A stretch of 64,000 nucleotides of DNA from Macrostomum lignano. Lineage: Eukaryota. Of the stretch, positions 12,077 to 50,752 are shown piece after piece; position 1 is the stretch's first letter; the number at the start of each line of letters is the position of its first letter. The notes under the pieces are model-generated. The model searched no databases. It saw nothing but the letters and a program-made list of their open reading frames with translations, and was not told where the DNA came from. The stretch is from NCBI GenBank assembly GCA_002269645.1, contig NIVC01000471.1, forward strand, positions 239,215 through 303,214, read 5' to 3'. The translations under genes and the position numbers were made by a program.

Positions 12077-15000
12077 ATGACTCAGCAAATTTCACTCGCG
12101 CCACCCGGGCCGTTTACAATCGATAGCGACTGCCACTCCACAGCACAGCGCTGGACTGCATGGACTCGTCGCTTCGCCACGTACATCAATGCAGCTGGAA
12201 TCACCGACAAGACTCGAGGGCAGCAGCTGCTGCTGTACGCCGCAGGAGAGGAGCTGCAGGCTGTAGTCGAAGAGAACGAGATCGCCTCTGGAGAGGACTA
12301 CAGCAGCCTCGCGAAAACCATCCAGACGTTCTGGGACGGGAAGAATAACATTGTGTTCCTGCGTTTCAAGTTTGAGACCTGCAGACAGCAGCCTGGCGAG
12401 CAGATCGACCAGTGGTATCAGCGTCTGCGCAAGGCGGCGGAGCCGTGTGAGTTCGGGACCCTCAGAGACTCGCTGATCCGTGACAAAATCGTCGCCTACT
12501 GCGAATCTGAGAGACTCAGGAGAGACTTCTTGCAGACCAACAATATCTCCCTGGCAGATGTGCTCAAAAAGGCGAGGGCGAAAGAAGCCGCGGAGCAGCA
12601 GGCCACCGCGATGGAGAGCGACAGACCAGGGAACCGCAGCAGCTCGCAGCAGTCAGAAGAGACCAGAAGCCACAGATGCCGCAGACACCAACGCAGCACG
12701 TATCGTGCGATCGCTGCGGCAGGCCAGGGCACCCCACGTGCACCGCAGCGCAGGGCAAGAGCTGCAGAAAGTGCGGGAAGCCGGGCCACTTCGCGCGAGC
12801 CTGCAGGTCCAAGCAGGGCGCCCCGCAGAGCGGCGCCGACGCCGTCGCAACGCTGCAAGGCGAGACCAGCTACCAGAAGGTGGACCACCCGGACTCCGGC
12901 GTGTTCGAGGTCGATCAGGGTGAGCAGTCGGCCCACACAATAGCCGAGATCAACGGCTCCAGACTGTCGGTGTTGATCGACAGCGGTGCGGCTCGAAATG
13001 TGATCAACCGGGCCACGTTCGAGAGTCTGAGACAGCGGCCGCACCTGCAGACCACCTCGGACAGGCTGTTCGCGTACGGGTCGGACAGGCCGATGCAGCT
13101 GCTGGGCAAGGCGGCGATGGACGTCCGCATTTTCGGCCGGCAGGCAGTCGCCACGTTCCACGTCGTCGAAGGGAGAGGCATCACCATCATCGGCAGGCAG
13201 ACGGCCACTCAGATGGACATCCTGCGGGTCGGGCCACCACCGACAGCCGGACAGCAGGTGCTGCAGGTCGCTGAAGCGGAGGCGGCGGTCGATGGCCTTC
13301 TCAGCGGCACGAGATCCAGCGGAGTGCCTCAAGGACACGTCGAGGACATCGGCAGGGTGCTGCGCAAGCACGCCAGCGTGTTTAGCGGAGTCGGCTGCTT
13401 CACCGGGCCGCCTGCCGACATCCACCTCACCGACAGCGCCCGCCCAGTCTGCCATGCGCCTTCGAAGGTGCCGATCCACCTGGCAGACGCGGTGGTCAAG
13501 GAACTGCAGTTGTTAGAGCAGCTCGGGATCATTGAGCCCGTCGACGGCCCGGCGCCGTGGGTCGCGCAGATGGTCGTTGTGCCCAAGAAGGAGCCGGGCG
13601 AGGTGCGCATCACGCAGGACCTCCGCGATGTCAACCGCTTTGTCATCCGCGAGCGACACCAGATTCCGACTTTCGAGGAGGTGACCGGGGACATGGCTGG
13701 CAGCACTGTGTTCTCAGAGCTGGACATCGCGAAGGCGTTCTACCAGGTGCCTGTCGCCGAGAAATGCCGCAACCTGCTAACATTCTCGACGCCTCGCGGG
13801 CTTCGCCGTCTCACCCGGCTGTGCATGGGCCTGTCCACCTCCCAGGAGATCCTGCAGAATGTGATGAGTCGAGTGCTGGCAGGCCTGCCCAACGTCAAAT
13901 GGATCCACGACGACGTGGTCGTGTTCGGCCGCACGATGGCGGAGCACAACAGCAGCCTCGAGGCATGTCTGGCCCGCCTGGCGCAGCACGGCATCACGCT
14001 GAACGCTCGGAAATGCCGACTGGCGCGCAGCAGCATCGAGTTCATGGGAATGCGGCTCACGGCGGAAGGGGTCCAGGCCACGGAGAGCAAGGTCGCCGCC
14101 GTTCAAGACTTCAAGGAGCCCGAGTCGATTGGGCAGCTTCGCTCATTCCTGGGCCTCGTGAACTACCTCGCCGTGTTCACGCCACAGCTGGCCAAGGTGG
14201 CGGAGCCGCTGCGGCGCCTGACCAGGAAGACCGTCGACTGGCAGTGGGGCGCCGACCAGGCCAGCGCCTTTGAGCAGCTGAAGCGCAGCATCGCGGAGCC
14301 GACAACGCTGGCTTTTTACGACAAGCGGCTACACACGCAGCTGATTGTGGACGCGGGGCCGACCGGACTGGGCGCCATCCTGGCGCAGGTGCAGCGCGAC
14401 GGCAGCTCAAGGCCAGTCGCATACGCCAGCCGGACCCTGTCCGATGTCGAGCGGCGATATTCGCAGACCGAGAAAGAGGCACTCGCCGTGAAGTTCGGCT
14501 GCCTGAAGTTTGAGTACTACCTGCATGGATCGCCCCAGTTCACAGTGGTCTCTGATCACAAGCCGCTGACGGCCATGTTCGCGCCTGGGTCGCGGCCGCC
14601 TCCACGAGTCGAGCGAATGGCGCTGAGGATCCAGCACCTAGTGTTCAAGGTCGAGTATCAGCCGGGAGCCTCCAATGCTGCAGATGTACTCAGCAGGCAG
14701 CCCCTAAGCGAGCACGACGGAAGTTTTGGCGAGCAGCGGAGGGAGGCCTACATCAACGAGGTGGCGCAGGCGGCTGTGCCGATGGCGCTGACACTCCAAG
14801 ACATCCGCAAGAGCTCTGCCAGCGACCCAGTCATCCGGGCGGCGATAGCGGCGACGCAAGGCGGTCGGTGGGATTGCTCCAACCCCGAGATGCGCTCGCT
14901 CCACGCGCTGCGAGAGGAGCTGTCTGCGGTTGACGGGGTCCTCCTTCGACACCACCGAATCGTCGTGCCAGCTGATCTGCGGCAGCAGATGCTCGAATTA

Positions 15001-16079
15001 GCGCATCAAGGGCACCAGTGCTCGCAGAAGACGATCGCCAGACTCTGCACGAAGGTCTGGTGGCCGAGGATGGCAACTCAAGCGGAGGAATTCGTCAGTC
15101 GATGCCGCAGCTGCGCCGTCACGTCGCACACGCCAGCCGTCCGGGCCACGCCTCTGCAGCCGACGCCGATCCCGCGGGCGCCTGGCTGTCGATCGGCGCC
15201 GATTTCGTGGGACCCATCAACAACAACATGCTGCTGGTGTGCGTGGACCGCTACTCAAGGTTTCCGGAGGTGCAGCTCATGCAGACGACGACGGCCGAGG
15301 CATTGATTCCCCGCCTGCGAGAGATGTTCGCCCGTTTCGGGATCCCACAGGAGCTCGTGACAGATAATGGACCACCTTTCTCGTCCAAGGAGTTCGGCCG
15401 GTTCCTGGCGAGCTACGGGATCAAGCACCGCCTCATCACGCCCTACTACCCAGCGGCCAACGGCATGACAGAGCGACTGAACCGCTCCATCAACAAAGTC
15501 GTGCGAGCAGCCATCGAGGAGCGGCGGGACTGGAGGGCCGCTCTGGACGAGTGGCTGCTGGCCTACAGGAACACGCCGCACACGGCCACCGGGCGCGCAC
15601 CAGCCGAGCTGCTGATGGGCCGGCGGCCAAACGACATAATCCCCGCCGCCCGGCCGTCCCAGCGAGTCCGCATCAACGAGCAGCGGCTGAGAGAAGCCGA
15701 CGCTGGCGCCAAGGCGGCGATGAAGCAGCACGCGGACGCAAAAAGGCGACCACGGCGGCACGACGTCCAGGTCGGCGACTCGGTGCTACGACGGCGGGTC
15801 GGTGCCAGCAAGACGCAGACGCCATTCGAGAGCGGTGCCTGGACAGTCCAGCGGGTGGCCGGCAACTCGCTGCTGCTACGCCGGGACGGCACGACCTGCT
15901 GGCGGCACTGCACGGCGGTCAAAGTCGTCAGCCCCGACTTGGCCGACGCCGGCGCCCAGACGCAGACCGCTGCACCGAGAGCTTCGGGCGAGGCGGCCCG
16001 AGATCCACCCGCCTCCCCCGTGGCGCTGCGCCCGCACCCCCGCGCTGCTCGGGCGGGCGTGAAAATCTACAAGGACTGA
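12077..16079 (+). CDS. gag-pol polyprotein read across two -1 frame breaks (~12625-12640 and ~15170-15185)
   Basis: Gag N-terminus in ORF 12077. Zinc knuckle CRKCGKPGHFARAC, protease LIDSGA, RT ELDIAKAFYQ / IHDD, RNase H VDAGPTGLGA / YSQTEKEALA and integrase HH-CC are in ORF 12676. The integrase core (ADFVGP, TDNGPPF, NGMTERLN) is in ORF 15018. Confidence 0.93.
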
Positions 16080-16304
16080 ATTTGAAATCCTGCAATGACT
16101 GAAATTAACTGACTTTCTTTTCCGTAATATGCGGACTGAAGTTTTTTTACGTTTTTGCTGCATTCGATTCAAATATTTTATTTCCTTAATATTTTAATCT
16201 CCATTTTCAATGCGCATCATCGGTGAATCTTTCGAACTTTGTATTTTCGAGTTACGTTTAAATTGATTTTCTTCTCTCTCAGTCTCTATTCGAAAGGGGA
16301 GAGA

Positions 16305-17209: not shown

Positions 17210-19601
17210 TCACCAGAAGTGACACTTGTCATTATCAGTCAGGTACATGGGGTCTCCCGGCTGGCATTTGAACACCCTGGCGAAGTCCTTCGACTGCATC
17301 ACCTGACCGTTCACTCTGGGATGCGGAGGCGAGTGACGCTTATCTTTGAATACAGAGATCAGGGTGTTCTTTTCCGCCTTTGTGCAGAGCAGCTGAGCAT
17401 TGTGGATGAAGAACAGCTGATCCGGTGTCAGCCCCGCCAGCTTCTCTCCTGGAATCAGCCGGGGCCGCCTCCCAGACTTTGCCGAACTGCTTCTGTAAGC
17501 TCGGAAGGCAGAATTGATGCCAACAATATCGGCAAAATTTTCGTTAAACTTCCGCACTCCTGCATTCATTGAATTGTCCCAAATGTCGGATTTTGCAAAC
17601 TCAGGATCGATGATCTGGTTGTAGAAATCTGCCAGACATTGAGATTGCTTGTCATACCGCAGCGCTGTGAGATTGTCAAATACACCTATCTGTTCCTCTC
17701 CAACGCTAATTTTTTTATTGCCTAATTTGTCAAAGGCGTGCCCGACCTCGTGGCCGACTGTGCCGCCGATGCCTCCGTACAGCAGGCAGTCGGGGTAGCC
17801 CTTCATGTAGACTTTGGTGAGCAGCAGGCCCAGGTAGATGAAGAGCGAATTCAGGTGTAGCGAGTAATGAGCGTTGACAGTAAAAATTCTTGAAAAAATG
17901 TCACTTGGCATCAAGTCCTGTTTGTCAGCTGTCAAAATCCAAAGTCGATTCTGAAGCTGAGTGCTTTTAAACTGCAAAACAACATCGCCAAATGTTCTGC
18001 TTTGGTTAACTTGAGCAGCAACTTTTGAGTAGCCTTCGGTGAACTCGGAAATGTTGAACTGGGGGTAGCCGACGGTGCTCCGAATGGCGTCGAGCTTCTT
18101 CTTAATTGCTGCCTTACTCGGCTGCTCAATCCACGCCTCGCTGTCCACATTCTCCCACATGGCCTCCTTGATGTCGCCGACTACCGCTTTCACTGAGTTG
18201 AAGTCATCTGTGACGAAGGCGCTGCTGAACATCTGCAAAGCCACTGGCGGCATGGAGCCCAACATCATGTCCATGCACAGTCTTGAGCTGTTCCGGCTTT
18301 CTTTCTCATGAATGAGATACTTTTGTTGCCCGAAAAGGTTTTTAAAGAATTTAAACGATTCGTCTGGAAGAAAATTGACTGCCGACAATGCAGAGTCCAT
18401 GCGAATAAAGTCGTAGTACGGTCCCTGTCTGTGCTCCAGCTCCGTTGTGAGCTGCTCGAGTACAAAAAATAATAGCGGGTACCTAATAATCTTGACTCTC
18501 ATTGAGGGAGGTAACTTATTGGCTGAATACTTATTCACAGCGCTGTAAAACTCCGTCCAGTTAAAGTTGAGATTATCTGCCTCAACCTGAGTAAAATTCT
18601 GCAGCTGTTCCAGAGAGTAAGGACCAACTTTCAAATACGATTCGCCTTTGTTTAACATTTGCTGAACTGCAGGCTTCATCTGATTTATACTAACAGTCAA
18701 ATTCAGGTCTATGAGATCACTGAAATCTTCTAATGCAGAAATTCCGTCATTGAAAACATGATTCCAGGATTTCAGGGTAGATAGGTAGTATGGTGACGAG
18801 TGCAATCTCAGACTCCGCTCCGCCGAGCCTGGCGACAATCTGAACAGATCCGATGTACCGGTTATTACCAGTCTCGCTAGGAAGTCTTCGATGCCTGAGT
18901 AGCCCTCTAGAAAGTCCAACAAAGGTCTCACTAATGATTTCATGTCGAAAGGTCGTTCTCCAGTCTGCCAGCTGTTCGGGAGAAATTCCTCTTTCTTAGA
19001 ATTCAGAACGCTGGAGCCGCGCCAATCCATGCAGGTCCCGTAGATGGATCGCAGAGTCTGGAACAGCTGCGCTTCGCTTGCGTCTCTGGGCTTGGACAAG
19101 TTCTTGAAGTACATCATCTCAAATAGATTTCCTTGAATGGAGTTGTCCTCCTGTAGTACTGAGCCCACGGTCTCGGCGGTGAAGGGGTGGGTTTTATGGA
19201 AACCGCCGCAGGCGAAGCTGTAGAAGTCTTGGCATGGGTCCGCAGATCGGTCGATGTGGCTCTGCAGCAGTGCGCTTGCACTTATGCAGGCCTCGCTGGT
19301 GCACAGGCTGGGATGCTTGGGAGTGGCTGCTCCAGGTGGTAACCGAGCTGTGCTGAGAGCGTAGAGCAGAACGAAAACTAGAAGCAGAATTGACAGAACC
19401 GCAATCAGCAAGAGCATCAGCAGGCGTCTTGCTCGATCAAGTCGAGTTGAAAACTCAACTCTGCCGCCATCGAGAATGCTCTGTTGAAAATTCAGCAATT
19501 TGAGGGTAGGGTTAATCCAGTTTGACTGTCTGACAGATGGAATTTCCCAATGAAAATGTTCTTACCATTGAAGTTGCCGCACTGCTACCAGCAGACATCA
19601 T
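17210..19601 (-). CDS. Neprilysin / endothelin-converting-enzyme-like M13 zinc metallopeptidase, ~768 aa, type II membrane protein
   Basis: Exons 19601-19566 (MMSAGSSAATSM|GTAAG) and 19480-17210 (TTTTCAACAG|), phase 0, 85-nt intron. N-terminal TM anchor, CTSEAC..DPCQDFYSFACG, VNAHY, HEVGH (HExxH), ENFAD, HSP and a C-terminal C..W are all M13 hallmarks. Confidence 0.95.
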
Positions 19602-23604: not shown

Positions 23605-25094
23605 TCACCGCAGCCGGCAGTTCAGACAGCAGCGCCGCAGCTGCGACTTGAAATGAGGAATCGATAGCGAATAGATGACGAAATTCGCTACAGAATCGGC
23701 CGTGGTCAGCACGTTGGCGACGCCCATGAACATGTTGATGCCCGGCCATTCTAGATCTTTAATCGCCCCAGCAACCAGCAGAGGCAGCTCACAGATGACA
23801 AAGGCCGAGCAGAGTACCAGGACCGTGCGGTTCACCGACCTGACGAAAAGCAGACAGCGGTTTCAAAATTCTTAACTACGTCAGATGAGTAACAGAATGA
23901 AAGTGAATTTTAGAGTGTTGGTTTCTCTGTCAAATGTCAAATGTCAGATGTCAGATGTCAGATGTCAGATGTCAGATGTCAGAGAGTGTACATCCATGAC
24001 GATTGGAAAGTCAGGGTCGCTGTACACCCTATGTGAGCGTGTGTACAGTGTGTATTCAGGAGTTAGCGAAAAGGACAGAAGTGTCGTCAACCAGCCAGAT
24101 TTTACACCTACTTCTGGCCCAACAACGGAGAATAGTAGTCGACAGGTAAACCGCCAGTTCTGAAAAGTCGTTTCAATCTTATAACCAAATTTTGCGCTTA
24201 CCCAGCCTGCGCCTCTCGCTGCCGTCTCAGTCTGACGAAGAACGGAGCCGGGACATTCCTTAACAGCTGGCGGTCCGCCCGCTTCAGCTGGTACAGGGTG
24301 AGGCAGCTGACTACGAGAAGACAGAACACTGGGAGCAGCGAGTGCAGCGCAAAGAAGCACCTGGGGTAGATCCAGTAGGCAGCGGATGTGGCAAATGGGG
24401 CGGCCTTGATCGCTACAATCTTCTGAGTAGCCGGGCACATGGTGTACCTCACCTCCAGCGCCCGGGGCAGAGTCACCAGCAGCGACAGCCCAGCCAGAAG
24501 GCCGGATGCCTGGTTCACCGACCGGCTCGGCGGCGGGGACGTCATGAGGGTGCGTCCGCTGACGGCGCGCCACCTTCGCCAGGCGATGTGCACGATGAGC
24601 CAGTTGCGGGTCAGCGAGCTGGCCTTGTACACCAGCCAGAGCGGGTAGAGCATCAGCTTAGACAGCCAGCCGGGACCCGACGGGAGCCGGTGGCCGGCAG
24701 GCGGCGCGGTCAGCAGGTAGTACAGCTCGAACAGCAGCGCCGACAGACTGAGGACCACCTCGCAACCGGTGAGGTGCAGCAGCATCTGGGACAGGGCGCT
24801 GCAGGTGCATAAGTTACCTGTAGTTTCGTTACTAATCGAGTGGTTTAAGCTGCTGTTGCTGTGCCGGACATTTCTCTGGCGGTAGTGCCGATACCAGAAC
24901 ACGTAGAAGGACGCAGCGGAGACGACCAAAGCCAGCAGTGCCAGCCCTGCTTTGAACAGGTACAGCACGTCCGTGGCAGTCTGTTCGGGATTGGATCCGA
25001 ACCAAAACACCATCCTTGATGGCAATTCAAGATTTGAGCAGTTCTCAGCGAACCACAAGTCGCTGTCAGCTTCTACTTCCGTTGGAGTAGTCAT
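23605..25094 (-). CDS. Class A (rhodopsin-family) 7TM GPCR, FMRFamide-receptor/srw-like orphan, ~375 aa
   Basis: Exons 25094-24202 (GG|GTAAGC) and 23839-23605 (TTTTCGTCAG|G) join in phase. Seven hydrophobic segments. TM3 end RNWLIVHIAWRRWRAV, TM5 LHSLLP, TM6 FVICELP, TM7 DSVANFVIYSL, C-terminal FKSQLRRCC. Confidence 0.85.
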
Positions 25095-30210: not shown

Positions 30211-30462
30211 GGAATTTTCATTCCAGTGAGCTGAGGTGGGCCTGTGTGATTTCTCACATTCCAAAGTGATCCGCCGTCAGGAAATCCGATATGCTGCTGA
30301 GGCCTCGATTATTTTTGGTCTCGACTAACCAAAGCAGATTTTGGGACAGCGAGTCGATGGACTGAGCTATATCATAGGACGGAATGACCTGAGAATGGTG
30401 TAAACACATCCTGCTGTTGCTGCCTCTGTAGCATATTGATAGGAGGAAGTGCTTTGTCTAGT

Positions 30463-32113
30463 TGAGTCACTGGATGATGGAGTAACTGAATGATTGAGTC
30501 ACTAAAAGATTGAATCACTATATGATTAGGTAACTGAATTATTGAGTCTCTAGATGATTGAGTCACTGAATGATTAAGTCACTGAATGATTGAGTCACTG
30601 AATGATTGAGTCACTGAATAATTGAGTCACTGAATGATTGAGTCACTGAATGATTAAGTCACTGAATGATTGAGTCACTTCATTATTGAGTCACTGAATG
30701 ATTGAGTCACTTCATGATTGAGTCACTGAATGATTAAGTCACTGAAGGATTGATTCACTGAATGATTGATTCACTGAATGATTGAGTCACTGAATGATTG
30801 AGTCACTGAATGATTGAGTCACTGAATGATTGGAATGATTGAGTCACTGAATGATTGATTCACTGAATGATTAAGTCACTGAATAATTGAGTCACTGAAT
30901 GATTGAGTCACTGAATGATTAAGTCACTGAATGATTGAGTCACTTCATTATTGAGTCACTGAATGATTGAGTCACTTCATGATTGAGTCACTGAATGATT
31001 AAGTCACTGAAGGATTGATTCACTGAATGATTGAGTCACTAAAAGATTGAATCACTATATGATTAGGTAACTGAATTATTGAGTCTCTAGATGATTGAGT
31101 CACTGAATGATTAAGTCACTGAATGATTGAGTCACTGAATGATTGAGTCACTGAATAATTGAGTCACTGAATGATTGAGTCACTGAATGATTAAGTCACT
31201 GAATGATTGAGTCACTTCATTATTGAGTCACTGAATGATTGAGTCACTTCATGATTGAGTCACTGAATGATTAAGTCACTGAAGGATTGATTCACTGAAT
31301 GATTGATTCACTGAATGATTGAGTCACTGAATGATTGAGTCACTGAATGATTGAGTCACTGAATGATTGGAATGATTGAGTCACTGAATGATTGGAATGA
31401 TTGAGTCACTGAATGATTGATTCACTGAATGATTAAGTCACTGATTGATTAAGTCACTTAATGATTAAGTCACTGAATGATTGATTCACTGAATGATTGA
31501 TTCACTGAATGATTGAGTCACTGAATGATTGATTCACTGAATGATTGAGTCACTGAATGATTGAGTCACTGAATGATTGAGTCACTGAATGATTGATTCA
31601 CTGAATGATTGAGTCACTGAATGATTAATTCACTGAATGATTGATTCACTGAATGATTGAGTCACTGAATGATTGATTCACTGAATGATTGATTCACTGA
31701 ATGATTGAGTCACTGAATGATTGATTCACTGAATGATTGAGTCACTGAATGATTGAGTCACTGAATGATTGATTCACTGAATGATTGATTCACTGAATGA
31801 TTGAGTCACTGAATGATTAATTCACTGAATGATTGATTCACTGAATGATTGAGTCACTGAATGATTGAGTCACTGAATGATTGAGTCACTGAATGATTGA
31901 GTCACTGAATGATTGAGTCACTGAATGATTGATTCACTATATGATTAGGTAACTGAATGATTGATTCATTGATTGATTGAGTCACTGAATGATTGATTCA
32001 CTGAATGATTAATTCACTGAATGATTGAGTCACTGAATGATTGATTCACTGAATGATTGAGTCTCTAGATAATTGAGTCACTAAATGATTGAGTCACTGA
32101 ATGATTGAGTCAC
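30463..32113. repeat. 16-bp minisatellite (GAGTCACTGAATGATT)
   Basis: Direct reading, with an internal block duplication (about 30480-31020 repeated at about 31020-31400). Confidence 0.95.
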
Positions 32114-32455: not shown

Positions 32456-32560
32456 ATGACGCTACGAATCTTCTGCCTGCAGGTCAGTTATTTAGTTTGT
32501 TAGTTCGTTTGTTTGTTTGTTTGTTTGTTTGTTTGTTAGATAGTTACTTTAGTTAGTTAT

Positions 32561-32633
<73 letters not shown>

Positions 32634-33440
32634 CAGCTAGTTAGTTAGCTAGCCAGTTAGTTAGCTAGCCAGTTATTTAGTTAGTTAGCTAGCCAGTTAG
32701 TTAGCTAGCCAGTTAGTTAGCTAGCCAGTTAGTTAGCTAGCCAGTTAGTTAGCTAGCCAGTTAGTTAGCTAGCCAGTTATTTAGTTAGTTAGTCAGCTAG
32801 TTAGTTAGCTAGCCAGTTAGTTAGCTAGCCAGTTATTTAGTTAGTTAGCTAGCCAGTTAGTTAGCTAGCCAGTTAGTTAGCTAGCCAGTTATTTAGTTAG
32901 TTAGTCAGCTAGTTAGTTAGCTAGCCAGTTAGTTAGCTAGCCAGTTATTTAGTTAGTTAGCTAGCCAGTTAGTTAGCTAGCCAGTTATTTAGTTAGTTAG
33001 CTAGCCAGTTAGTTAGCTAGCCAGTTAGTTAGTTAGGTTGGTCACTGTGTGCTGTTTCACCCCTGCCGGGTCTTCAGGTACTTCTGGTGAGCCTGGTGGC
33101 ACTGTCGATGATGGCTCCATCGCATTGCTCAAGCGTCGACGAGCTGGAAGAAGACCAATCTGGAATCCGCCTGATCAGACCGCGGCATGCTTCGCTTGAC
33201 AAGCTGGAGCGGAGTCTGTACCGCCTGCTGCTGACTTCGCCGGAGCATCGGCAACAAGGTGGAGCCGCCACCGCCGCCGCCGCCAAGCAGCTCGCGGCCG
33301 CTCTGGCAGCTGAGGAGCCCGGAGAAGACGTGGTTCGAATTCGGTGAGGTTTTTATGACGAATTACAAGTATATTCGAGACGTTTGAAAAAACTAAATCA
33401 CCAATTTATAACAAAACTGGTTACTTTCAGATTCGGCTGA
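32456..33440 (+). CDS. RFamide neuropeptide precursor (divergent NPF/NPY-like), 100 aa, C-terminus ...EDVVRIRF-G-stop
   Basis: Exons 32456-32482 (MTLRIFCLQ|GTCAGT), 33078-33343 (CTTCAG|...ATTCG|GTGAGG) and 33431-33440 (TTTCAG|A TTC GGC TGA) are all in phase. Signal peptide MTLRIFCLQVLLVSLVALSMMAPSHCS, RxRF plus an amidation Gly, and a phase-2 intron in the Arg codon of RF. Confidence 0.82.
32490..33035. repeat. (GTTT/GTTA/GCTA)n microsatellite in intron 1 of the RFamide gene
   Basis: Direct reading. Confidence 0.95.
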
Positions 33441-34428
33441 ATCCAGTTCAAAGTTGGCTTGTTTCTAAGAAGTCTCTCGCACAATGTCACCAAGTTGAAC
33501 TAATAAAGTACACGGCATGAACAGTTATTGTTCTGATGTAATATCTTTTTGCAATGTGATGAGCCCGCAATTGTAAACAATTAATAAATAGTTGATCATT
33601 GGACTTTACCAGTCGGCGATCTTACTTGTAGTATGATCGATCGTTTCTGCACATCAATTGTGATTTTGCGAGGTGCCGTCAAAATTGGCTATTTTCAAGT
33701 TTTTTGTTTTAATGAAAGTTTCATTTTAAGATTTTATTATTTATTAATAATTATTCAAATAATTCTGATTTAGTTAACACACGATACACGAGTCACGATA
33801 AAAGGTAGACTCATATTGAGAATTCAGAGCTATATATTTGACAATTAATATTTTAGAATTAAAAGTTAAATAACTAATAAAAATAAGAAGTTATTAATTA
33901 TTTAAATTACATATGTGGGATTCTTGATAAATACGCAGAATTACAATTTATAAAAATATTCTCAGAATAACGATTAAACAAGCCGATACGTACAGTTTGA
34001 CACAGGCAGTAATTAAATATATAATTTTTTAACGTTCATTGTTTGTTTACTTCAGCTTCTAAAGAATATATTTTGAGCAACAAAGATATATAGGGTTAGG
34101 TTAAAATTTGTTTTTCTGCCACTTTCGTTTCAGCAACTGCGGAATTAAATAAGTTAATTATAACAAACAAACAAAATGGCGTCAAAATAGCTACTGAACG
34201 AGGAGACAAAGATCCAGAATATCTTTTTTTAAATCATTTTTCTGTTACTTTTAATATATTATATAAGAAATACTTTTTATTTATAGGCAACTTCATTCAT
34301 AAACAACATTTTTGGTTAGAGGCTTCAGTTAGTCGCAAAGTTTCTACATTAAAGTTGTCTTTGGGTAAAACTTTTTGATCATGTTGAACCTGAAACAGTT
34401 CAGCTGCTGCAGATAATCTCGGGTATAC

Positions 34429-37400
34429 TCAAATGTCCATCTTTTTCATTCGCTCCATCAGCAACTCTACAGCCCGGTCATTCTCCTCCTTGGACAGAAC
34501 CGGCTGCCTCTCGCCGCGACCCCCTTGGTAGCTCTGTGGGATGGGAGCGAATCTTGCTGTTTCTACTTTTTCCCTATGGAAATGAAATGGGAACTTGAAA
34601 ACAAATCAAAGAATAGTGTACAAGTCAGCAAGAAGCAGTGCTGCGAGAAGACGTGGCTTTTAAATTTCTTGCTTGAACAATAGTGGTATATTAGCTTTGG
34701 CTGGTGAACTTTTTTTGACAGAAAGCTTTGCAATTTTAGAACACAGACATGAGGTTCTAGGATGGCTATTAGTGATTCAAGATAACTCAGACTGAGATAC
34801 AGATATTTACTCATGCAGCGACAATGCTCTCAGGTGATGTGATCGTGAGTAGCCCTTTTATCTGAAACAGAGTTAAGAAAAAGTACATAATATCGCTTAA
34901 AACATGTTTTGGTTTGAGGCAGATGGCCTCTATTTTTAAAGACAAGACGCACATGTACTTTTAAAAGGACTTGTCGAGAATAAGATCGAATACTTGAAAT
35001 CAAATTTTAATTTCTAGGATAGAGTAGCGGCACATCAAAGAATCTTAGATAGTAGCGGCACATCAAAGAATCTTAGATAGTAGCGGCACATCAAAGAATC
35101 TTAGATAGTAGCGGCACATCAAAGAACCTTAGATAGAAGCGGCACATCAAAGAATCTAGGATAGTAGCGGCACATCAAAGAACCTAGGATAGTAGCGGCA
35201 AATCAAAGAACCTAGGATAGTAGCGGCACATCAAAGAACCTAGGATAGTAGCGGCACATCAAAGAATCTAGGATAGTAGCGGCAAATCAAAGAACCTAGG
35301 ATAGTAGCGGCACATCAAAGAACCTAGGATAGTAGCGGCACATCAAATAATCTAGGATAGTAGCGGCAAATCAAAGAATCTAGGAAAGTAGCGGCACATC
35401 AAAGAATCTAGGATAGTAGCGGCACATCAAAGAATTTATCAAACTCACCACGCTGAAGGGCCTCGGGTTGAGACTCCGGGCGCTGGAACGAGCGCTGCTC
35501 ATCCGTGACAAGGAGTGCTGGCCGTGCGCCTGTAGAATTCAGTTCGCACTTAATCATAAATCATAATTACTGCGGAAAAATTTCGTAAAAAAATATTGAT
35601 AATTCCGTATTGCTCCTACCTCGGAATCCCATTCAAGATCCTCTTCATTCTCGCATTGGTTGAGAGCGGCCAGGTATTCTAAATGCGATAAATTAACGCA
35701 TAATTTAGTAACAAATTGTTTCAGAAAAGTTCATCAGTTCAAGGACAACACTCGACACTAATGGATCGAGAGTCCCTGTAGCTATGCAAGTTCTACGATC
35801 AACCATCCGTCTTTTCGAGCCTTTTCGAGTAGCTCTCTTAATATCCCAGCTTACGCCCAGTTCGAGACTTGACTCACAAAACTCGTTAAAAGACAGGTTT
35901 TACCTTTCTAGAACTGGGGTGTTGGATTCATGGGTTGCTGTGCCGCACCAGAGAGTCCCTCTTGCACGCACGCGACAGTGATGATATCAATCAAGATTAA
36001 CTCAGACTGAATAAATTGACATTTTACCCCCCAAATAGAGCAATATGAAGTCCCTAATTCTCTTTTTCTACCTAATTCTAGTTCTCGATTAAATTCCATA
36101 TCATAATCCCCAGTCTCACCCTTGCGCTTCTTGGGGTTGATGATGCGAAAGATGCGAATCAGGCTGGCGCTGTCCTCCAGACCCGCGCCCCCGAAGATGT
36201 AGCACATGTGCCGGTGTATCCAGGCACCGTGGTGGATAAGGTTCTCCGGCTGCCCACCAGACGCTGGCAGAGCCGACGGCACCTTCCAAGTCCGCTTGTA
36301 GAGGCTGAACTTCATCAGCGGCTCCTGGACCGGGCCGCCATCCGGGAACACGCAGTCGTTGTAACCCCCGAATAGGAACAGGTCCTTGGACTGGTGCGCG
36401 GTGAGGCTGTGCCCGGCTCGCGGCATCGGCAGCAGGTGACCTTCGACTGGGACGCGCGACCACTGCAGGGTGGCTGCAGAAATCGGGAAAATATTCTGAA
36501 TTGGCTACTGTAAGTAGAGGCCATTTGAACTTCAGCGCTTTCGATGCTTTATGAAGATTCAACTGACTGGAAAATATGGTATTTAGTTCAGCTGGAATCC
36601 ATGCTAATCATGCTTGGGCGCAACCTAGGGATTCACCCGGCCGTTTCTATTGGCAACACACACATGTAAGTCGCTATTGGACGGAATAGTAGTCACGTGA
36701 CTGCTCTCAGCCAATAGCGACTTACATGTGTGTGTTGCCAATAGAAACGGCCGAGTGATTCCCAAGGTTGCGCATGTGTGATGCTAATGATGCTGGAATC
36801 CATGCTAATGAAGCTGAAATCCATGCTAATGAAGCTGGAATCCATGCTAATGAAGCTGGAATCCGCAATTTTGAACGTGCGAGGTCCATAGCTCAACCGT
36901 CAAGACCAGTTGACAAATACACATACATGCATCATCTCTGTGAGTCCCTGGCTATGAAACTATTCATCCACGTTTTCCTTGTCTTTGAGTACCGGGGCCA
37001 CTCACCAGTGTCCAGCTGGTGCAAGTCGTTGTAAAAGCAGCCCTGACCTCCGGTGCCTCCGAACACGTACAGGCTCTGTCCCACCGCAGCGGCCGCGTGT
37101 TCGCATCTGGGCGACGGCGGCGCGCCGCTGACCGTTGCCCGGTGCCAGTGCTGCGCCATGATGTCGTACACAAACGTCGTATTGCTAAGGACGCCGTTGC
37201 TATGGCCGCCGAATACAACAAGCTGCGATTCGATCATGTTGCTGGTGTTGTACACCTGCTCGGGCTCCTCTCCGCTGGCCTTGACGTGGGTCCACTTGCG
37301 CACCACTGCAGAGTTTATTTGCAGATTTTTGGGCTTTTCAACTTCGAAATGAAAAATTTAAGGATATCAACTCGGCTTTTACTACCTTAGGGGCGTCGAT

Positions 37401-38648
37401 GGGCTTTAAGGGGTAAGAGCGCTTGAGGCGCCTGCACCAGAGGCGCCAGCACCAGAGGCGCCAGCACCAGAGGCGCCAGCACCAGAGGCGCCAGCACCAG
37501 AGGCGCCAGCACCAGAGGCGCCAGCACCAGAGGCGCCAGCACCAGAGGCGCCAGCACCAGAGGCGCCAGCACCAGAGGCGCCAGCACCAGAGGCGCCAGC
37601 ACCAGAGGCGCCAGCACCAGAGGCGCCAGCACCAGAGGCGCCAGCACCAGAGGCGCCAGCACCAGAGGCGCCAGCACCAGAGGCGCCAGCACCAGAGGCG
37701 CCAGCACCAGAGGCGCCAGCACCAGAGGCGCCAGCATCAGTGGCGCCAAAAACAAAATAATCACGCATTAGGAAAATGAAAAAAATGGGAGCAGAGGCGC
37801 CTCAACTGCTGCATGGGGCGATAAATCAGCTGTCAGAGAGCCAATTGAGAGGTGCCGTGACCCCCTTGCGCCTGGGCTACGTCTCTGCATGGCCATATAT
37901 TAGTCCTTGACATTGTACGGTAAGTGTAGCGCTGATGAGGGTCATACTGCATACAATTTCATATCATTGAAATGCAACACTAGAATCGCTTACAAACGTC
38001 GAACTGGTAGGTTCCGGGAATGCAGGAGGCCTCATTAAGATTGCTCTTGCCGCCAAACAGGATTAATAAATTCTCGAATAGGCTGGAATTAAAAAAATAC
38101 ATTATTAAAAATATATATTTTTTCATTCTGTCAATGACAGTTCTTAAGTTCAGATTTGTATTTTTCTGGTTGATAAAGTTGTGATAAAGTTAGCAAATTT
38201 ACTACTACAAATAGTGCAAAAGGGGGCACTTACTGCAAGTGGTGATAGGCCCTGGCCTCAGGCACGTCTCCATGCCCTGACGAAATTTTCACACATTTTA
38301 ATCTTTGACTATCCTGAACTGAAAAAATGAATTTTATGATGCCAGCTGATAAAGAAGGTTATGTATAAATTCTTTTAAGATATTTGTCCATCTTTGAAAG
38401 TATTACTGCACAGAAATTTAATAATCAATTTAGTCCAATGTACCTGAGATTTTCCAGATGTCGTTGTAGAATGTGATTTTCTTTCCAGACTGGAAAATTG
38501 CATAAATCAGATCAAAGTAAGGAATTTCCGCAGGAATGCATTAAGCAAGAAATTCTATCTTCAAAAATGTATTCTTACCTTCGAAAGCTTGAACCCTCCG
38601 TGCAAATACAAATCATTATTCCTAGTCTCCGTTATAGCTGTGTTGTGT
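34429..38648 (-). CDS. Kelch-repeat (beta-propeller) protein, RABEPK/KLHDC-like; 5' and 3' ends uncertain
   Basis: Phase-compatible exons 38648-38579 (LYLHGG), 38489-38444 (FYNDIW), 38276-38234 (PEARAYH), 38082-37994 (LILFGG), 37305-37006 (LVVFGG; PSPRCEHAAAAVGQSLYVFGG) and 36473-36120 (PRAGHS..LFLFGG; YIFGG). Candidate tail exons are 35678-35620, 35529-35449 and 34556-34429. The start exon was not found. Confidence 0.8.
35030..35435. repeat. 28-bp tandem repeat (TAGATAGTAGCGGCACATCAAAGAATCT)
   Basis: Direct reading. Confidence 0.94.
36618..36773. repeat. Near-perfect inverted repeat (63-bp arms, 30-bp spacer) in a kelch-gene intron
   Basis: 36618-36680 GCGCAACC...GTCGCTATTGG is the reverse complement of 36711-36773 CCAATAGCGAC...GGTTGCGC with about 3 mismatches. 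The spacer contains the palindrome AGTCACGTGACT. Confidence 0.92.
37388..37887. repeat. 15-bp tandem repeat (GCACCAGAGGCGCCA; ~37427-37750) inside a possible degenerate MITE
   Basis: The array is near perfect. The ends TAGGGGCGTCG... and ...CTACGTCTCTG resemble CAGGGGCG-type TIRs only loosely, and no TSD was seen. Confidence 0.8.
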
Positions 38649-41600
38649 CTGAAATAATGGGTTTAATGAGTGCACGAACCCTGATTATTGTTGTATCTGA
38701 GCCCTTGTCAGAGTTCTTAAAAAGAATACATGCTGATTCAAAATTTTTTAAATGAGATCAATATGGATATCGCGGCTTCTATGAGTTGGATAAAGGAATT
38801 GTGTCGAGGAAAAGAAAGAACCTAGAGCATTGAGACTTACATTACAAGGGAGCAGTTGTTGGCTGAAAGAAATACATTTCTTACAAAACGCCATTGACCC
38901 AATTTTTCGCTAGCCCTTTATATTAATACTTTACTTGTTATATTAGAAATTTATATTGTTTAATCATTATTTATAGAAATACAAAATATAATATTTTTTT
39001 GTAAAACTCATGAGCGAAAGCAAATGAACTCTTGTTCAGAAGTTAAAAATACCTTTTAAGCTGTTCAACAGAGTCTTCTGCGATAGAAGACAACCAATGA
39101 ATTGAGGGCAAAGCCATTTATCATTGGCAACAAACTAACTACAAAGGAATCAGGAGAGTCAAATCAAGCCAGGCCAGAAGGAATCGAGTAATTTACAGCA
39201 GGTTGTCGTGTTAAAAGCATATTATTTACCCTCGAAATAAAAATTATGTCTTCTAGTCTTCTACTTTTTGTAACAAATTTTGTAGTACAGCATAAGCTCT
39301 ATTAGCCTAGAAACAAAATTTTTAGTTACTTGGAATAAAAATAAACTAGCTTTGTTATAACGAACAATAGTTCACAGAAAGTTTTTTTTTAAATTAAGCC
39401 GCAATGTGCTTCTGGTGCTTCTGCAACCGATCGAGTTTAGACATAGTTTACAGTTTACAAGCTGGCTCGCAGCTCGCTCAAGCTGTTCAGTGTTCAAGAT
39501 AATGCAAAAAACGAGAGTACTTCTATGACGAGCAATTTTAGTAATGCGGCTTATAAATTAGACCAAATTAAAGGTTGATTTTTCGTCTTTGTGCAATGTG
39601 CATAAATATGGTCCAAGACCAATTCTATTGTCCCGTGTCCTCAAGTCCAAGGGCAAGGCCCAGGGGAGGGGCGAGAGCCGATATGAAAAAGTTTGAATTA
39701 TTTCATTCACAACAGTTATTACGACTTTAGTCAATACCAACATCTTTTCTACTGGTTAAAAACAATGTTTTGACTATTTGTACTTGTCTTTAAGAAGCCA
39801 AATTGTTTCATTGATTTTTGTGAATAGCATTGGCCTATTTTCTAATATTTCTGAGGGCTGAGGCTAGGACCTAGCCAGTAGTACAACCAGAAATTTGTTG
39901 GGGGGGGGGATGAATTCTGAAGGGTAAGGACCCAAGAGGGCAGAGGAGGTGCGGCTCTCCAGGCTTTGTATTTTGGCAAAAATTCACTTGGTCCCCCTTT
40001 TCCATAGTTTGGAACACCCTGAATGTACGCCAGACTAAAATCTCCCACAATTTTTTTGGTACACCAGTATATGCCAAATTTTTTCCAACCCAAAATTAAA
40101 ATCCCAGATTTACAGAAAAAATAAGCCTTAGGCTATTATGAGCCTTATTTCTTATGTTGCGCTGTTGCGTTGCATTGAATGACCTATTTTGCTCTTTCAT
40201 TTCACTTTTTGCTTGTTCGCTGATACTCTTTATGGCAGGATGTCAATACATGCCAAGATTTATTTCATTTTTTCAAAATAATTACTTTCTACAATTCCAT
40301 TTAAATTTACTGTTATTTTACTATTTGATTTTGCAATTGTAGGAACATGTATCATGATGTATGCCACTTTTTCACTATCCATTTTTTACATAAAATAGGG
40401 CCTAGTACGCCAAATTTAAAAAATTAAAAAAAATTGTATATTTAAAGTCGTGAGTATAGGCCTATGAGACAGGCATTAATAATAGCTCTAATACTTTTAA
40501 ATTTTACTCGTTTTGTTTGCCTTTCTTAGAAAAACCTTTATTCAAATCTGCGCAAAATATTTGTTTGAATTTTGTGGTTTGCAAAAATATTTCTGCAATT
40601 ATTATTTTGTTTAAACTATAATGAATTTTGGGTATAAATAGACACGCTGAGCAGACTTGAGGAAGCAACCGTTTGCTGCCTCTCAGTTTTCGATAAGCAA
40701 ATTTAGTTCGTTCTAAATATTGAAATTGCTTAAAGACTTAATCATTTCTTAGAGTATAAGAACCCCAATTGGGAGTATCAGAAACCGCTACAAGCGAGAA
40801 ACCGCCTTAGGGCAGTAAATTGTAAATTTGCCTCAGGGCAGGAGAACCGCCTCATAACGAGAGAAGATCGCCTCAGGGCAGAGAAAGAGCATAAGCTGTG
40901 ACCCTCTGATCCAGGGAACGCCCAGGACTGAGAGAATAATATTAGGGGAAGCATAGGAATAGAATAGACAGTGCTATTAGACCGCTCAGGCTAGAAAGTA
41001 CAATAGAAGTACATACGCTACCAATAGAAGTACATACGCTACCGATAGAAGTACATGCGCTACCAATAGAAAGACAATTAATAACCAGTAGAATTATTAA
41101 GGAGAAATAGCTTTATTACAACTTTGGGTGGCATTTAGGATTCTCAGTGTACAGGGAAGAGCACTGTGACAACTTGATAACAGCAGTGGGATATTATTAA
41201 GAGGGAAGCAAACCCCCTGTAACAACTTTGGTGGCAGCTAGTAAGGCTAGCAAAAGGAATAATTAAGAGCCCTACGACACCTATACTAGATTAATCTAGC
41301 ATACTACCCCTCTTCTAGACTAGGGCGCCCCTCAACAATGCTTTGATTTTCTTTCTGCCTCTAAAAGAGTAGGGGGAGGATGGTAACAACTGCCCCCTGC
41401 CCCTACCCACCCTCCCCCCCCCCCTAGTTAGGCCACTAGATCTAGGTCCTAGGTAGGTGGCAAGCCTATTACAATTTGGGATTATTATATTATAGGTCTA
41501 ATTATATAATAGGCCTAGTACTTAATTATTCAATAAGAATAAATAGACCAATGAAAAAATTAATTTTTAACCATCTTCCAAACACTAGGCCTAGGCCTTA

Positions 41601-42656: not shown

Positions 42657-43852
42657 ATACATTTGTCTGTTATGCATGCACTAGGACTAGGTCCAACTTA
42701 AAATTTTATTTCTATTGTATATATACATATGCACCACTCAGCTAAGCTGGCCACTCTGGCTGGCTGGCTGGCAAATAGCAAGGTTCTTAGCCAAGGTAAG
42801 TTGCAAAAATGCTTACTTAAAATATCTAAAAATATAAATGTAATATAAATTAGATAATGAAACGATTAACTTTAATAATACAACCATAGTTACTCCTATC
42901 ATTTATCCATAACTATATTAATTTTCTTACATCTCTTTTCTACCTAGGTAAGTTGCATTGGTAAAAAGATAAGCTGCATGGCTAGTTTAAATCATTTTTG
43001 TTATGTATATATATAATTGTATAATAATATCTCCCTCAGTGCTATAAACATTGGCTCATTATGAATCATTGAACATATTAATCATATTCATTTAGATGAT
43101 ATATATTGGCTCATTTACTATCATGATACCAATAGCAACTCATTGGCTATATTGCATACATGGGACTATCAACTTATATAATTATATAAGCATCATACAT
43201 AAGATAATCATCTAGGACCATTAACTCAAAAGTAAAGACAAACATTTTTAGCAGAAAAAACTGCTTTTGGCAAATTGAATTGTGATAAATTTGACTTGTT
43301 CCTTGCCAAATCCTAACCCGAAGTAATAATATATAAGGCAATATTAATAAAAAGAAATTTAATGACCCAATAAAAATGTAATGATGCATTGAAATAAAGT
43401 CTAGGAGTGTGTCAGCTTAAGAGCAACATTATATTGGATGTATTAAGTATCTAGGATAAATACTAGGTTCTAGATATTAGTTATTTAGTTAATTAGTTAT
43501 TTAATACTATTTGATTTGTTATTTAAATAGCCCTATTAGTATTCTGTGAACCTATCCGGTATTTAGTGGCCCCAAATCAGTAATCAGTGCCCTAAATATT
43601 TATCCAATGGCCCTAGTGAGTGATCCATATTACTTATTCTTCTACTTTTCTCATCAGCATTCTAAATCTAAATTGAATTTTATATAATGTATTGCATGAA
43701 AATACAAGAAAAGACTACCAATTGTATTTTTCAACAATAAATTTGAATATAATTTTTACTTGCTTGTCTCTTACTTGAATAAGTAAAATTATTCATAACC
43801 CTCTGCTAATCGATTGGAATTTTTGTCTGCAAGCAATAATCTGAACGCAGCC

Positions 43853-46166
43853 ATGGCCAAAGTTAACATTTCAAATGTGGAAGTCCTGGACACAGAGGCC
43901 ACCTTTCTCAGCCCATTTCGCTTCAAAATCACATTCGAGTGCTACGAACCGCTGGAGGAGGACTTGGAGTGGCGATTGATCTACGTTTCTAGCGCTTATA
44001 ATATGTCGCTAGACCAGACTCTGGACTCCATCTTGGTCGGCCCAGTGCCAGTTGGCAAGCATCAGTTCGTGTTCGAGGCTGGCCCGCCAAATACTGACGT
44101 TATTCCAGTTGAAGATGCTGTTGGAGTCACCGTTGTGATTGTGGCCTGTCTGTATCGCGATCAGGTTTGTCGCTTTCAACTGAAAATTTTATTTCTATTA
44201 AGTGAGATTGTGTACCAGGAAGTACGAAGCTCGGTTAATTCTGGTTAATTACGATTTCCTGAAGTCTGCCATCCCAAGGCGTCAGCGCCCCGAAAGATCC
44301 CCCCCCCCCCCAGAGACAGATTCCCTCCAGAGACAGATCCCCCAGACACAGATCTTCCAGAGACATATCCCCTGAGACATTCCCCCTGAGGCTGATCCCC
44401 AGAAAAATTCCCCCTGAGACAGATCTCCCAGAGACATTCCCCCTGGGACATTCCCCCTGAGGCAGACCCCCCAGAGATATCCCCCTGAGACATCCCTCGC
44501 AGACAGATCCCTCAAAAACAGATCCCCCAAAAACAGATCCCTCAAAAACAGATCCCCCAAAAACAGCCCTCAAAAACAGATCCCCCAAAAACAGATCCCT
44601 CAAAAACAGATCCCCCAAAAACAGATCCCTCAAAAACAGATCCCCCAAAATCAGATCCCCCAAAATCAGATCCCCCAAAAACAGATCCCTCAAAAACAGA
44701 TCCCCCAAAATCAGATCCCCCAAAGACAACCTTAAAGACAGACCCCAGAAGACAGGCTACCAGAGAAAACTCCATAGATAACCAGAGACAGCCCCTACTA
44801 GACTAGACAGATTAAAGTACATCTACTCAAGCCCACCGCCGCGCACCTGCCGACAGGAGTTCATCCGCGTCGGCTACTACGTGAACAACGAGTACTCAGA
44901 CGAGCAGCTGCGCGAGACTCCGCCAGACCGGCCGCAGTACGACAAGCTGGCCAGGCAGATCCTGGCCGGCAATCCGAGGATCACCAGACGCGGCATCGAC
45001 TGGGGCGAGAGTGTCGCGGGCGCCACTGCGGATTCTGCCTTCGAAGCAGCCGTGGCTGGTTGCCAGGCTGTCGCTGGCGCTGCTGAGGCTGCCGACTCAG
45101 GGTCCGGTTCTGTGCAGAAGCAGCAGTCCGCTGATGCGGAGCCACAGCAGCAGCAGGTATTGTGATTGATAATTTCGTTTTTATTTTATGACTGATGTTT
45201 TTTAAAGCAAAATTTCCTTCATAGTCCAAGTTGAAATCATAACCTTTTCACCCTAATTAAAAATCTATACTGTATGACCCCCTATTAAAAATCAATACTT
45301 TATGACCCCCTAATTAAAAATCTATACTGTATGACCCCCTATTAAAAATCAATACTTTATGACCCCTTATTAAAAATCAATTCTTTATGACCCCCAATTA
45401 AAAATCAATACTTTATGACCCCAAATTATAAGTCAATACTTTATGACCCCCAATTAAAAAATCAATACTTTATGACCCCCAATTAAAAATCAATACTTTA
45501 TGACCCCCGAAGAAAAATCAATACTTTATGACCCCCGAAGAAAAATCAATACTTTATGAACCCAAAAAAATTAATACTTTATGACCCCAATTAAAAATCA
45601 ATACTTAGTAGTCCTCAATTAAAAATCAATACTTAGTAGTCCTCAATTAAAAATCAATACTTAGTAGTCCTCAATTAAAAATCAATACTTAGTAGTCCTC
45701 AATTAAAAATCAATACTTAGTAGTCCTCAATTAAAAATCAATACTTAGTAGTCCTCAATTAAAAATCAATACTTAGTAGTCCTCAATTAAAAATCAATAC
45801 TTAGTAGTCCTCAATTAAAAATCAATACTTAGTAGTCCTCAATTAAAAATCAGTTCAAGTACTAAGTAGTATATGTTGCTTTTCAAGTAGACTATGAACT
45901 CCGAAGTGTAAAGTTTAAAATTATCATTTTGGCTGCTTACTTTTGACTCTTGAAAATTGCATTGTTTTCCATTTAAGCCACTTAGCCAGTCAGCTGAGTC
46001 GCAGCAGCGGCACCAGCAGGTGTCGGAGAGTAGCAATAAAAACTCCGACACAATGGACGGTGCCAATCCGACCAGCGCCGCTAATCCTGCAGCTGCTGCG
46101 GTGGCGCCAGCTTCCTTGGTTGCTAAGGAGAATTATGACCCTGGCGTGGCTGCCAGCGCTTCCTAG
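43853..46166 (+). CDS. ASF1: Histone chaperone ASF1 (~266 aa)
   Basis: Exons 43853-44164, 44857-45156 and probable 45978-46166 (all phase 0). MAKVNISNVEVLD, PFRFKITFEC, LDSILVGPVPVGKHQFVFEA, AVGVTVV and EFIRVGYYVNNEY..LRETPP are diagnostic. The last exon is low-complexity and less certain. Confidence 0.95.
44290..44790. repeat. ~17-bp degenerate repeat (CAGATCCCCCAAAAA) in ASF1 intron 1
   Basis: Direct reading. Confidence 0.88.
45270..45855. repeat. ~27-bp AT-rich tandem repeats (AATTAAAAATCAATACTTTATGACCCC / ...TTAGTAGTCCTC) in ASF1 intron 2
   Basis: Direct reading. The unit switches part way through. Confidence 0.92.
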
Positions 46167-49999: not shown

Positions 50000-50752
50000 A
50001 TGCTCAGCACCTCTCCTTCGCGTCTTCTTGTCCATCTTCTTCGGGCACATCGATGCCTCCTAGTTCGATGCTGCGCCGCCACCACAGCATCGCCGACATC
50101 CGGTCACCCTCCTCCAGTCGTTCGTGTTGAAGCATCTGACGCCGCTACTGAACAGGACATCCGCAGTCATCTCAGCCTGTTCCCCCAGTTCATCTCAGAG
50201 TCGGAGGAGGCCGCCCTGATGTCGGAGCTGCAGCCGATTCTCCGTAAATTGCGCTACGAGTCTGCACACTGGGACGACGCCATCCAAAACTACCGGGAGA
50301 CGGAGCGCACCGTCTGGTCGGATGCGAATCGCGCGCTGCTTCAGCGAGTGGCCGAGACAGCCGGACTGACCGGAAAGTCCCAGCTGGAGCATGTCCATGT
50401 GCTAGACTTGGCCGAAGACGGTCACATCCGGCCGCACGTGGATGCGGTGAGATTCTGCGGCTCCATCATAGCGGGCCTGAGCTTGCTGTCCGACTGCGTG
50501 ATGCGATTCACCCTAGCAACCGCCGAGCAATCCGCTTGGGCCAAAGTGCTGCTGCCGCGTCGGTCTCTTTACGTTATGAAAGACCGGCTGCGGTACGACT
50601 ACGCGCACGCTGTGCTGGGCAATGACGATGCCAATAATTGCATTGGAAAGCAGGTTGTGAGGAAGGGCAGGCGGGTTTCCGTCATCTGTCGGTGTCAGCC
50701 TGATCCGGAGAGAGTTAAAGCTGCCGATGGTGGCCAGGATGGATCTTCGTGA
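50000..50752 (+). CDS. ALKBH7: Mitochondrial Fe(II)/2-oxoglutarate dioxygenase ALKBH7, single exon, 250 aa
   Basis: Mitochondrial-type N-terminus, RYESAHWDDAIQNYRETE, HVHVLDL..GHIRPHVD..RFCG..IAGLSLLS, LPRRSLY..RYDYAH and RRVSVICR (HxD...H...R motif). Confidence 0.96.
   Translation: MLSTSPSRLLVHLLRAHRCLLVRCCAATTASPTSGHPPPVVRVEASDAATEQDIRSHLSLFPQFISESEEAALMSELQPILRKLRYESAHWDDAIQNYRETERTVWSDANRALLQRVAETAGLTGKSQLEHVHVLDLAEDGHIRPHVDAVRFCGSIIAGLSLLSDCVMRFTLATAEQSAWAKVLLPRRSLYVMKDRLRYDYAHAVLGNDDANNCIGKQVVRKGRRVSVICRCQPDPERVKAADGGQDGSS

Follow-up and report, generated by a model that had tools for sequence, protein, structure and literature searches.

A candidate RFamide peptide precursor with an NPY/NPF-type Arg-codon intron in the flatworm Macrostomum lignano

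We propose that a small gene of M. lignano encodes the precursor of an amidated RFamide peptide that is probably derived from NPF, a reading to which we assign a probability of about 0.55. Two features carry this proposal: an intron that interrupts the codon of the terminal Arg exactly where NPY/NPF genes are interrupted, and a spliced product that ends in RIRF followed by an amide-donor Gly and a stop. The remainder of the precursor is unlike any NPF that we compared with it. The gene is Mlig021140, copy g2 or g3; it is transcribed, has three exons and lies on the plus strand of the window, by which we mean the whole stretch of DNA analysed, that is the terminal 64 kb of the 303,214-bp contig NIVC01000471.1 (assembly GCA_002269645.1). 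The interval singled out by the earlier note, 32456-33440, coincides exactly with the annotated CDS span.

Gene structure, copies and surroundings

The gene is made up of the following parts, in which a slash marks a splice junction and positions are those of the window.

32456-32482, plus strand: exon 1, coding part; 27 nt, Met1-Gln9 (MTLRIFCLQ), n-region and start of the h-region of the putative signal peptide
32483-33077, plus strand: intron 1; 595 nt, phase 0, GT...AG, acceptor GTCTTCAG/GTA
33078-33343, plus strand: exon 2; from Val10 through the second base of the Arg98 codon, ending ...GTG GTT CGA ATT CG/GTGAGG
33344-33430, plus strand: intron 2; 87 nt, phase 2, donor CG/GTGAGG, acceptor TTACTTTCAG/A
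33431-33440, plus strand: exon 3, coding part; A TTC GGC TGA, which supplies the third base of Arg98, Phe99, Gly100 and the stop
33441-33588, plus strand: probable 3' UTR, with AATAAA signals at 33502 and 33583

Exon 1 reads ATG ACG CTA CGA ATC TTC TGC CTG CAG up to the donor CAG/GTCAGT; its ATG is preceded, five codons upstream, by a stop in the same frame, and the deposited 100-aa protein is reproduced only when this exon is included. Intron 1 is nearly all microsatellite, composed of (AGTT)n / AGTTAGCTAGCC units at 32486-33036. Exon 2 completes the signal peptide at about Cys26 (33078-33128), continues with an acidic/basic spacer and an Ala-rich helical segment, and runs out into ...EEPGEDVVRIR. 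Intron 2 cuts the Arg98 codon (CG/A) after its second base. The spliced CDS of 303 nt specifies the 100-aa prepropeptide MTLRIFCLQVLLVSLVALSMMAPSHCSSVDELEEDQSGIRLIRPRHASLDKLERSLYRLLLTSPEHRQQGGAATAAAAKQLAAALAAEEPGEDVVRIRFG, whose C-terminal end is VVRIRFG-stop if the intron is removed and VVRIR-stop if it is kept. The earlier note had stated that the RFG-stop is created by splicing, through the joining of CG/GTGAG to TTTCAG/A TTC GGC TGA at 33343/33431, and the gene structure agrees with it. The unspliced VRIR-stop is in itself nothing special, because a GTRAG donor in phase 2 is always read as xyG TRA and so gives an immediate stop.

How readily would such an arrangement arise by chance? We searched both strands of the 64-kb window for CG or AG joined to a GTRAG donor, an intron of 30-2000 nt, and a YAG acceptor followed by N TTY GGN and a stop. 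This strict splice-to-FG-stop pattern was found at a single site on the two strands, that of the peptide gene. In 200 first-order Markov simulations, 0.12 sites per window were expected; demanding in addition an open frame of 60 codons or more upstream brought this down to 0.01.

The spliced product is 100% identical (100/100 residues) to GenBank PAA81771.1 and PAA82424.1, entitled hypothetical protein BOX15_Mlig021140g2/g3 of Macrostomum lignano; the near-identical paralogue is g1. Three deposits of the gene product exist in GenBank (PAA81771.1, PAA82424.1 and PAA89281.1), all carrying only the label 'hypothetical protein'. The Mlig_3_7 annotation in GenBank was obtained from StringTie/TACO assemblies of RNA-seq data together with a de novo transcriptome, with CDSs assigned by TransDecoder, and was filtered for expression and coding potential (Wudarski et al. 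2017). Since this annotation is transcript-derived and the deposited CDS equals the three-exon product, transcripts spliced at both junctions are implied, and both junctions have RNA support by way of the annotation. The gene had been described in the earlier note as hidden and liable to be missed by ORF-based annotation. That description has to be abandoned: the gene is unnamed rather than hidden, because the RNA-seq-based GenBank annotation already makes the spliced CDS public. We are nearly certain that the gene model is real.

Copies of the gene lie at three loci, the one in the window (L001) and two others (L002 and L003), each with both introns. The L001 sequence, on contig NIVC01000471.1, matches window positions 22456-43440 base for base. 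A Kelch/beta-propeller gene with a 417-aa product (34429-39117, minus strand) stands tail-to-tail with the peptide gene, an arrangement that recurs in all three copies. The genome of the DV1 line is partly duplicated (Wudarski et al. 2017); as expected for such a genome, the three loci are recent duplicates, and so they give little independent information. Relative to L001, the CDS differs at 1 of 303 positions in L002 and at 2 of 303 in L003 (1-3/303 among the copies). Across the three copies, intron 2 is free of substitutions (0/87) and varies by a single indel of 3 nt. In the 1.5-kb flanks, L002 departs from L001 at 45/1420 and 33/1488 positions and L003 at 72/1324 and 35/1445 (2-5%), counts that call for caution because the flank alignments are repeat-rich. 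The low divergence of the CDS relative to the flanks fits mild constraint, as far as these sequences can tell, and adds little independent evidence. Three coding changes separate the copies, one of them synonymous and the other two S28R and Q67K; none falls within the C-terminal 33 residues. [quoted passage not shown]

The surroundings of the gene are rich in repeats. A 16-mer satellite, TTGAGTCACTGAATGA, is present in about 104 copies at 30462-32113; because it ends about 340 nt upstream of the ATG, the unique upstream region available for a promoter is very short. Ty3/gypsy-type LTR retroelement ORFs on the plus strand (about 12077-16100), encoding zinc knuckle, aspartic protease, RT, RNase H and integrase, lie within a GC-rich block of 62-66% GC. 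An intronless 762-aa ORF on the minus strand (17210-19498), 13 kb from the peptide gene, contains Peptidase_M13_N and Peptidase_M13 and is neprilysin/ECE-like, a class of enzymes that degrades or processes peptides. Housekeeping exons at 43814-44248, 50000-50752, 51919-54074 and 58261-58725 belong to genes for an ASF1 histone chaperone, a 2OG-Fe(II) oxygenase (AlkB-like), Gpi1/PIG-Q and an hSac2-domain protein. A bacterial promoter/terminator scan was set aside: the 'terminators' that it called are microsatellite hairpins, and such a scan is irrelevant to a repeat-rich eukaryotic genome. The earlier note had also pointed to a neighbouring GPCR, which corresponds to the following feature.

Exon A 24198-25094 and exon B about 23608-23862, minus strand: two-exon 7TM-like ORF with hydrophobic helices, unannotated

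Five long hydrophobic helices are encoded in exon A and TM6/TM7-like motifs (AFVICELP, NFVIY) in exon B, and the ORF is intact in all three copies with 98.8-100% protein identity. These features are 7TM-like. The name GPCR is not supported, as neither the 24198-25094 ORF nor the two-exon join matched a Pfam 7TM family, a homology search with the ORF returned no homologue, and GenBank holds no annotation for it. The AlphaFold model of the ORF has low confidence (pLDDT 52.7). On its sequence features, the 7TM-like gene may be regarded as a candidate orphan receptor; nothing links this candidate to the peptide.

The precursor and its predicted processing

The precursor begins with a putative N-terminal signal peptide, as expected of a secretory prepropeptide. 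Residues 1-26, judged by hydropathy, have a signal-type make-up of Arg4, a hydrophobic core at 5-18 and then the small residues A-P-S-H-C; the Kyte-Doolittle mean peaks at 3.2 over residues 10-18. The propeptide that follows comprises 74-76 residues, with a single RFG and the stop directly after the Gly. No dibasic site (KR, RR, KK or RK) occurs anywhere in the 100-aa precursor, and no aromatic residue is found between Tyr57 and Phe99. The middle of the precursor is Ala-rich and of low complexity, and the AlphaFold model, which is of low confidence (pLDDT 53.5), shows residues 49-62 and 64-87 as helical and gives no evidence of a hairpin. A sub-threshold match to Pfam Transketolase_C was set aside.

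A prohormone that is cut at single basic residues generally has a further basic residue at P4, P6 or P8, and a P1' residue that is neither aliphatic nor Pro. This general rule suggests two sites in the spacer.

33183-33212, plus strand: candidate monobasic sites RLIRPR45/H (basic P6) and KLER54/S (basic P4)

A cut at R54 would yield the 45-residue SLYRLLL...VVRIRF-NH2 and a cut at R45 a peptide of 54 residues, both predicted to be amidated. The earlier note had favoured release at K79/Q or R67/Q, a proposal that we could not uphold, as neither site has a basic residue at P2, P4, P6 or P8. From the residues around the cuts, KLER54/S and RLIRPR45/H appear to fit the monobasic rule better than either.

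We envisage the following course of maturation. The protein would enter the ER, where signal peptidase would cut after about Ser24 or Cys26, and the propeptide would be packed into secretory granules. There a prohormone convertase may cut at a monobasic site, best KLER54/S or RPR45/H; we propose monobasic cleavage because the precursor has no dibasic sites. A neuronally expressed PC2 homologue exists in M. lignano. As the chain terminates with Gly100, peptidylglycine alpha-amidating monooxygenase could then amidate Phe99 directly, without a carboxypeptidase step. This would leave a long peptide of about 45-54 residues, Ala-rich and helical, with ...GEDVVRIRF-NH2 at its end, which may signal through a GPCR of the RFamide or NPF type. 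That the gene encodes an amidated secreted peptide precursor of some kind seems to us likely, whatever its ancestry.

Relationship to the NPY/NPF family

NPF peptides are defined by an RxRF/Y-amide end (Fadda et al. 2019), and the spliced CDS closes with R96-I97-R98-F99-G100-stop, which supplies both the RxRF sequence and the Gly from which the amide is predicted to be formed. From chordates to nematodes, NPY/NPF genes have the Arg codon of their terminal RF/RY split by an intron after its second base (Yanez-Guerra et al. 2020), a feature for which these authors cite Mair et al. (2000). The same intron is present in the planarian npy genes displayed in Figure 2D of Collins et al. (2010), npy-11 included. 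The structure of the gene is recognized as a criterion of homology between neuropeptides. In the M. lignano gene, intron 2 has its boundaries at 33343/33344 and 33430/33431, between bases 2 and 3 of the terminal Arg codon, so that its position and phase are those of NPY/NPF; the earlier note had recognized this diagnostic intron correctly.

Beyond the intron and the C-terminal end, the likeness to the family ceases. We took the eleven Schmidtea mediterranea (Smed) NPY precursors from Table S5 of Collins et al. (2010) and built their cores into a profile. All eleven share L..YL..LN.Y..I.GRPR(F/Y), and against this profile the M. lignano precursor scores -0.5 bits. Pfam PF00159, the pancreatic hormone/NPY family, does not match the precursor at E<=10; this miss is a weak argument against NPF, because Smed-npy-2 likewise has no PF00159 match. 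The Tyr/helix motif of the PP-fold is absent from the precursor. So is the usual layout, in which a single peptide of about 28-40 residues directly follows the signal peptide and is succeeded by G(K/R)R and a C-flanking peptide. The earlier description of a strongly divergent, NPF-derived peptide is thus matched by the intron and by RxRFG, while profile and PF00159 reveal no other similarity. As sequence comparison does not place the precursor in the family, it is the intron together with RxRFG that makes the case for NPF ancestry.

Searches of protein collections did not widen this picture. A word-indexed search of 5.8 billion clustered proteins with the 100-aa product recovered only its own M. 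lignano cluster, and a full HMMER search of 1.84 billion representatives found no relative outside M. lignano. Two further HMMER matches (P0003 and P0004) proved to be tandem-repeat artefacts, in which 6-8 stretches align to the signal/spacer region and the RFG end is missing. A search with the 42-aa planarian NPY core profile, aimed at canonical M. lignano NPFs, returned only the S. mediterranea query proteins.

Known systems offer precedents for such a precursor. The nearest in layout is Smed-npy-7 of S. mediterranea (BK007020; Collins et al. 2010), another short precursor (80 aa versus 100 aa here), which also has a signal peptide, an N-terminal spacer and one C-terminal RxR(F/Y)-Gly followed by a stop, with neither KR nor C-flanking peptide. 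It ends in ...GRPRYG-stop, and monobasic cleavage has been predicted for it. The architecture of the M. lignano precursor therefore has a flatworm precedent. The earlier note was right that the precursor is devoid of the spaced Tyr residues, of KR and of a C-flanking peptide, but the want of the latter two has a parallel in Smed-npy-7. The Arg-codon intron is reported for the planarian npy genes as a family, so that for Smed-npy-7 the likeness in gene structure holds at family level. In sequence the two precursors part: Smed-npy-7 retains the family motif LLVYLLNEHFAIYGRPRY, whereas ...LAAALAAEEPGEDVVRIRF of the M. lignano peptide lacks both Tyr and GRPR and shows no detectable similarity. Canonical NPY/NPF genes, such as npf of Moniezia expansa (Mair et al. 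2000), vertebrate NPY and the NPFs of molluscs, annelids and arthropods, share the Arg-codon intron and the RxRF-amide end with the M. lignano gene. They differ from it in encoding 36-40 residues right after the signal peptide, usually ending in RPRF/RQRY and forming a Tyr-rich PP-fold helix, and then GKR and a C-flanking peptide with a further intron; here the RFamide end lies at a distance from the signal peptide, and none of these features is found. How far can an NPF be reduced and still be recognized? FLP-27 of Caenorhabditis elegans retains little beyond RxRF-amide and was assigned to the NPY/NPF type by the same Arg-codon intron (Yanez-Guerra et al. 2020), and is thus a precedent for placing a reduced peptide in NPF on this ground. 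FLP-27 belongs to another phylum, gives a short mature peptide and had independent similarity arguments, of which none is possible for the M. lignano peptide.

The ancestry of the peptide might nevertheless be another one. An amidated RFamide neuropeptide could be lineage-specific or related to FLPs or sNPF, with the Arg-codon intron present by coincidence or independent gain. The absence of the NPF helix motif would be natural on such a view, RIRF-amide comes close to the RLRF-amide of insect sNPF and to the xIRF-amides of flatworm FLPs (YIRFamide in Smed-spp-11), and ends of the G-stop type also occur in the planarian non-NPY precursors npp-3 and npp-4. We nonetheless hold this origin to be unlikely. 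sNPF and flatworm FLP precursors (Smed-npp-4, Smed-spp-11) contain several short copies between dibasic sites, while the M. lignano precursor has one RFG and no dibasic site at all; and genes of the sNPF/PrRP type have no phase-2 intron in the Arg codon (Yanez-Guerra et al. 2020), unlike the gene described here. An intron would fall on exactly this base by chance in something of the order of 1% of cases, an estimate based on two introns in 303 coding bases, and the exon junction TTCG/ATTC is not a typical MAG/R proto-splice site.

It is equally conceivable, and to our mind just as improbable, that the gene encodes a small, fast-evolving secreted protein, for example of gland or seminal fluid, whose RFG end is incidental and is not processed or amidated as part of a signalling peptide. 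An orphan gene for which no homologues were found, with an Ala-rich, low-complexity middle and no dibasic sites, would suit such a protein, as would the fact that two of the three coding differences between copies (S28R and Q67K) are non-synonymous. Both replacements, however, lie outside the C-terminal 33 residues, and the combination of a signal peptide, a length of at most 100 aa, an RxRF-Gly end and an NPF-type intron is improbable, as judged from the simulation and the estimate given above. The suspicion that the transcript model is spurious or non-functional and has no biological product can draw on the bare database name 'hypothetical protein' and on the fact that none of the papers in the collection searched mentions Mlig021140 or describes a VRIRF- or RIRFamide peptide. 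Against it stand an intact model with canonical splice sites at three loci, a CDS that is more conserved than its flanks, and an annotation that was filtered for expression and coding potential, and we consider it very improbable indeed.

Weighing these alternatives, we prefer the reading as an amidated peptide precursor that stems from NPF, and for the descent from NPF by itself the odds appear even or marginally better. In its full form the proposal is that the gene is a true NPY/NPF descendant, which would have kept only the Arg-codon intron and the RxRF-amide end, and in which an Ala-rich helix with monobasic cuts would have taken the place of the Tyr-containing PP-fold helix motif, the dibasic processing sites and the C-flanking peptide; for this version the balance seems even.

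Significance for M. lignano and the NPY family

What would such a precursor mean for the biology of the worm and of the family? The gene model itself is already known, as are the flatworm expansions of the NPY family; what is probably new is the reading of the gene as an RFamide/NPF-like precursor. With the model already public and those expansions well known, the gain in practice is a modest one. If the reading is correct, M. lignano, which serves as a flatworm model amenable to transgenesis and RNAi, would gain an unrecognised RFamide/NPF-like ligand in its peptide repertoire. It would also show how far an NPY-family precursor can drift while retaining the diagnostic intron. Were descent from NPF true, this precursor would surpass all other long NPF-type precursors known from flatworms in its degree of reduction, and would be a case in which the position of an intron has outlasted all similarity in sequence. 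Gene structure may in this way be useful for mining orphan 'hypothetical proteins' for neuropeptides.
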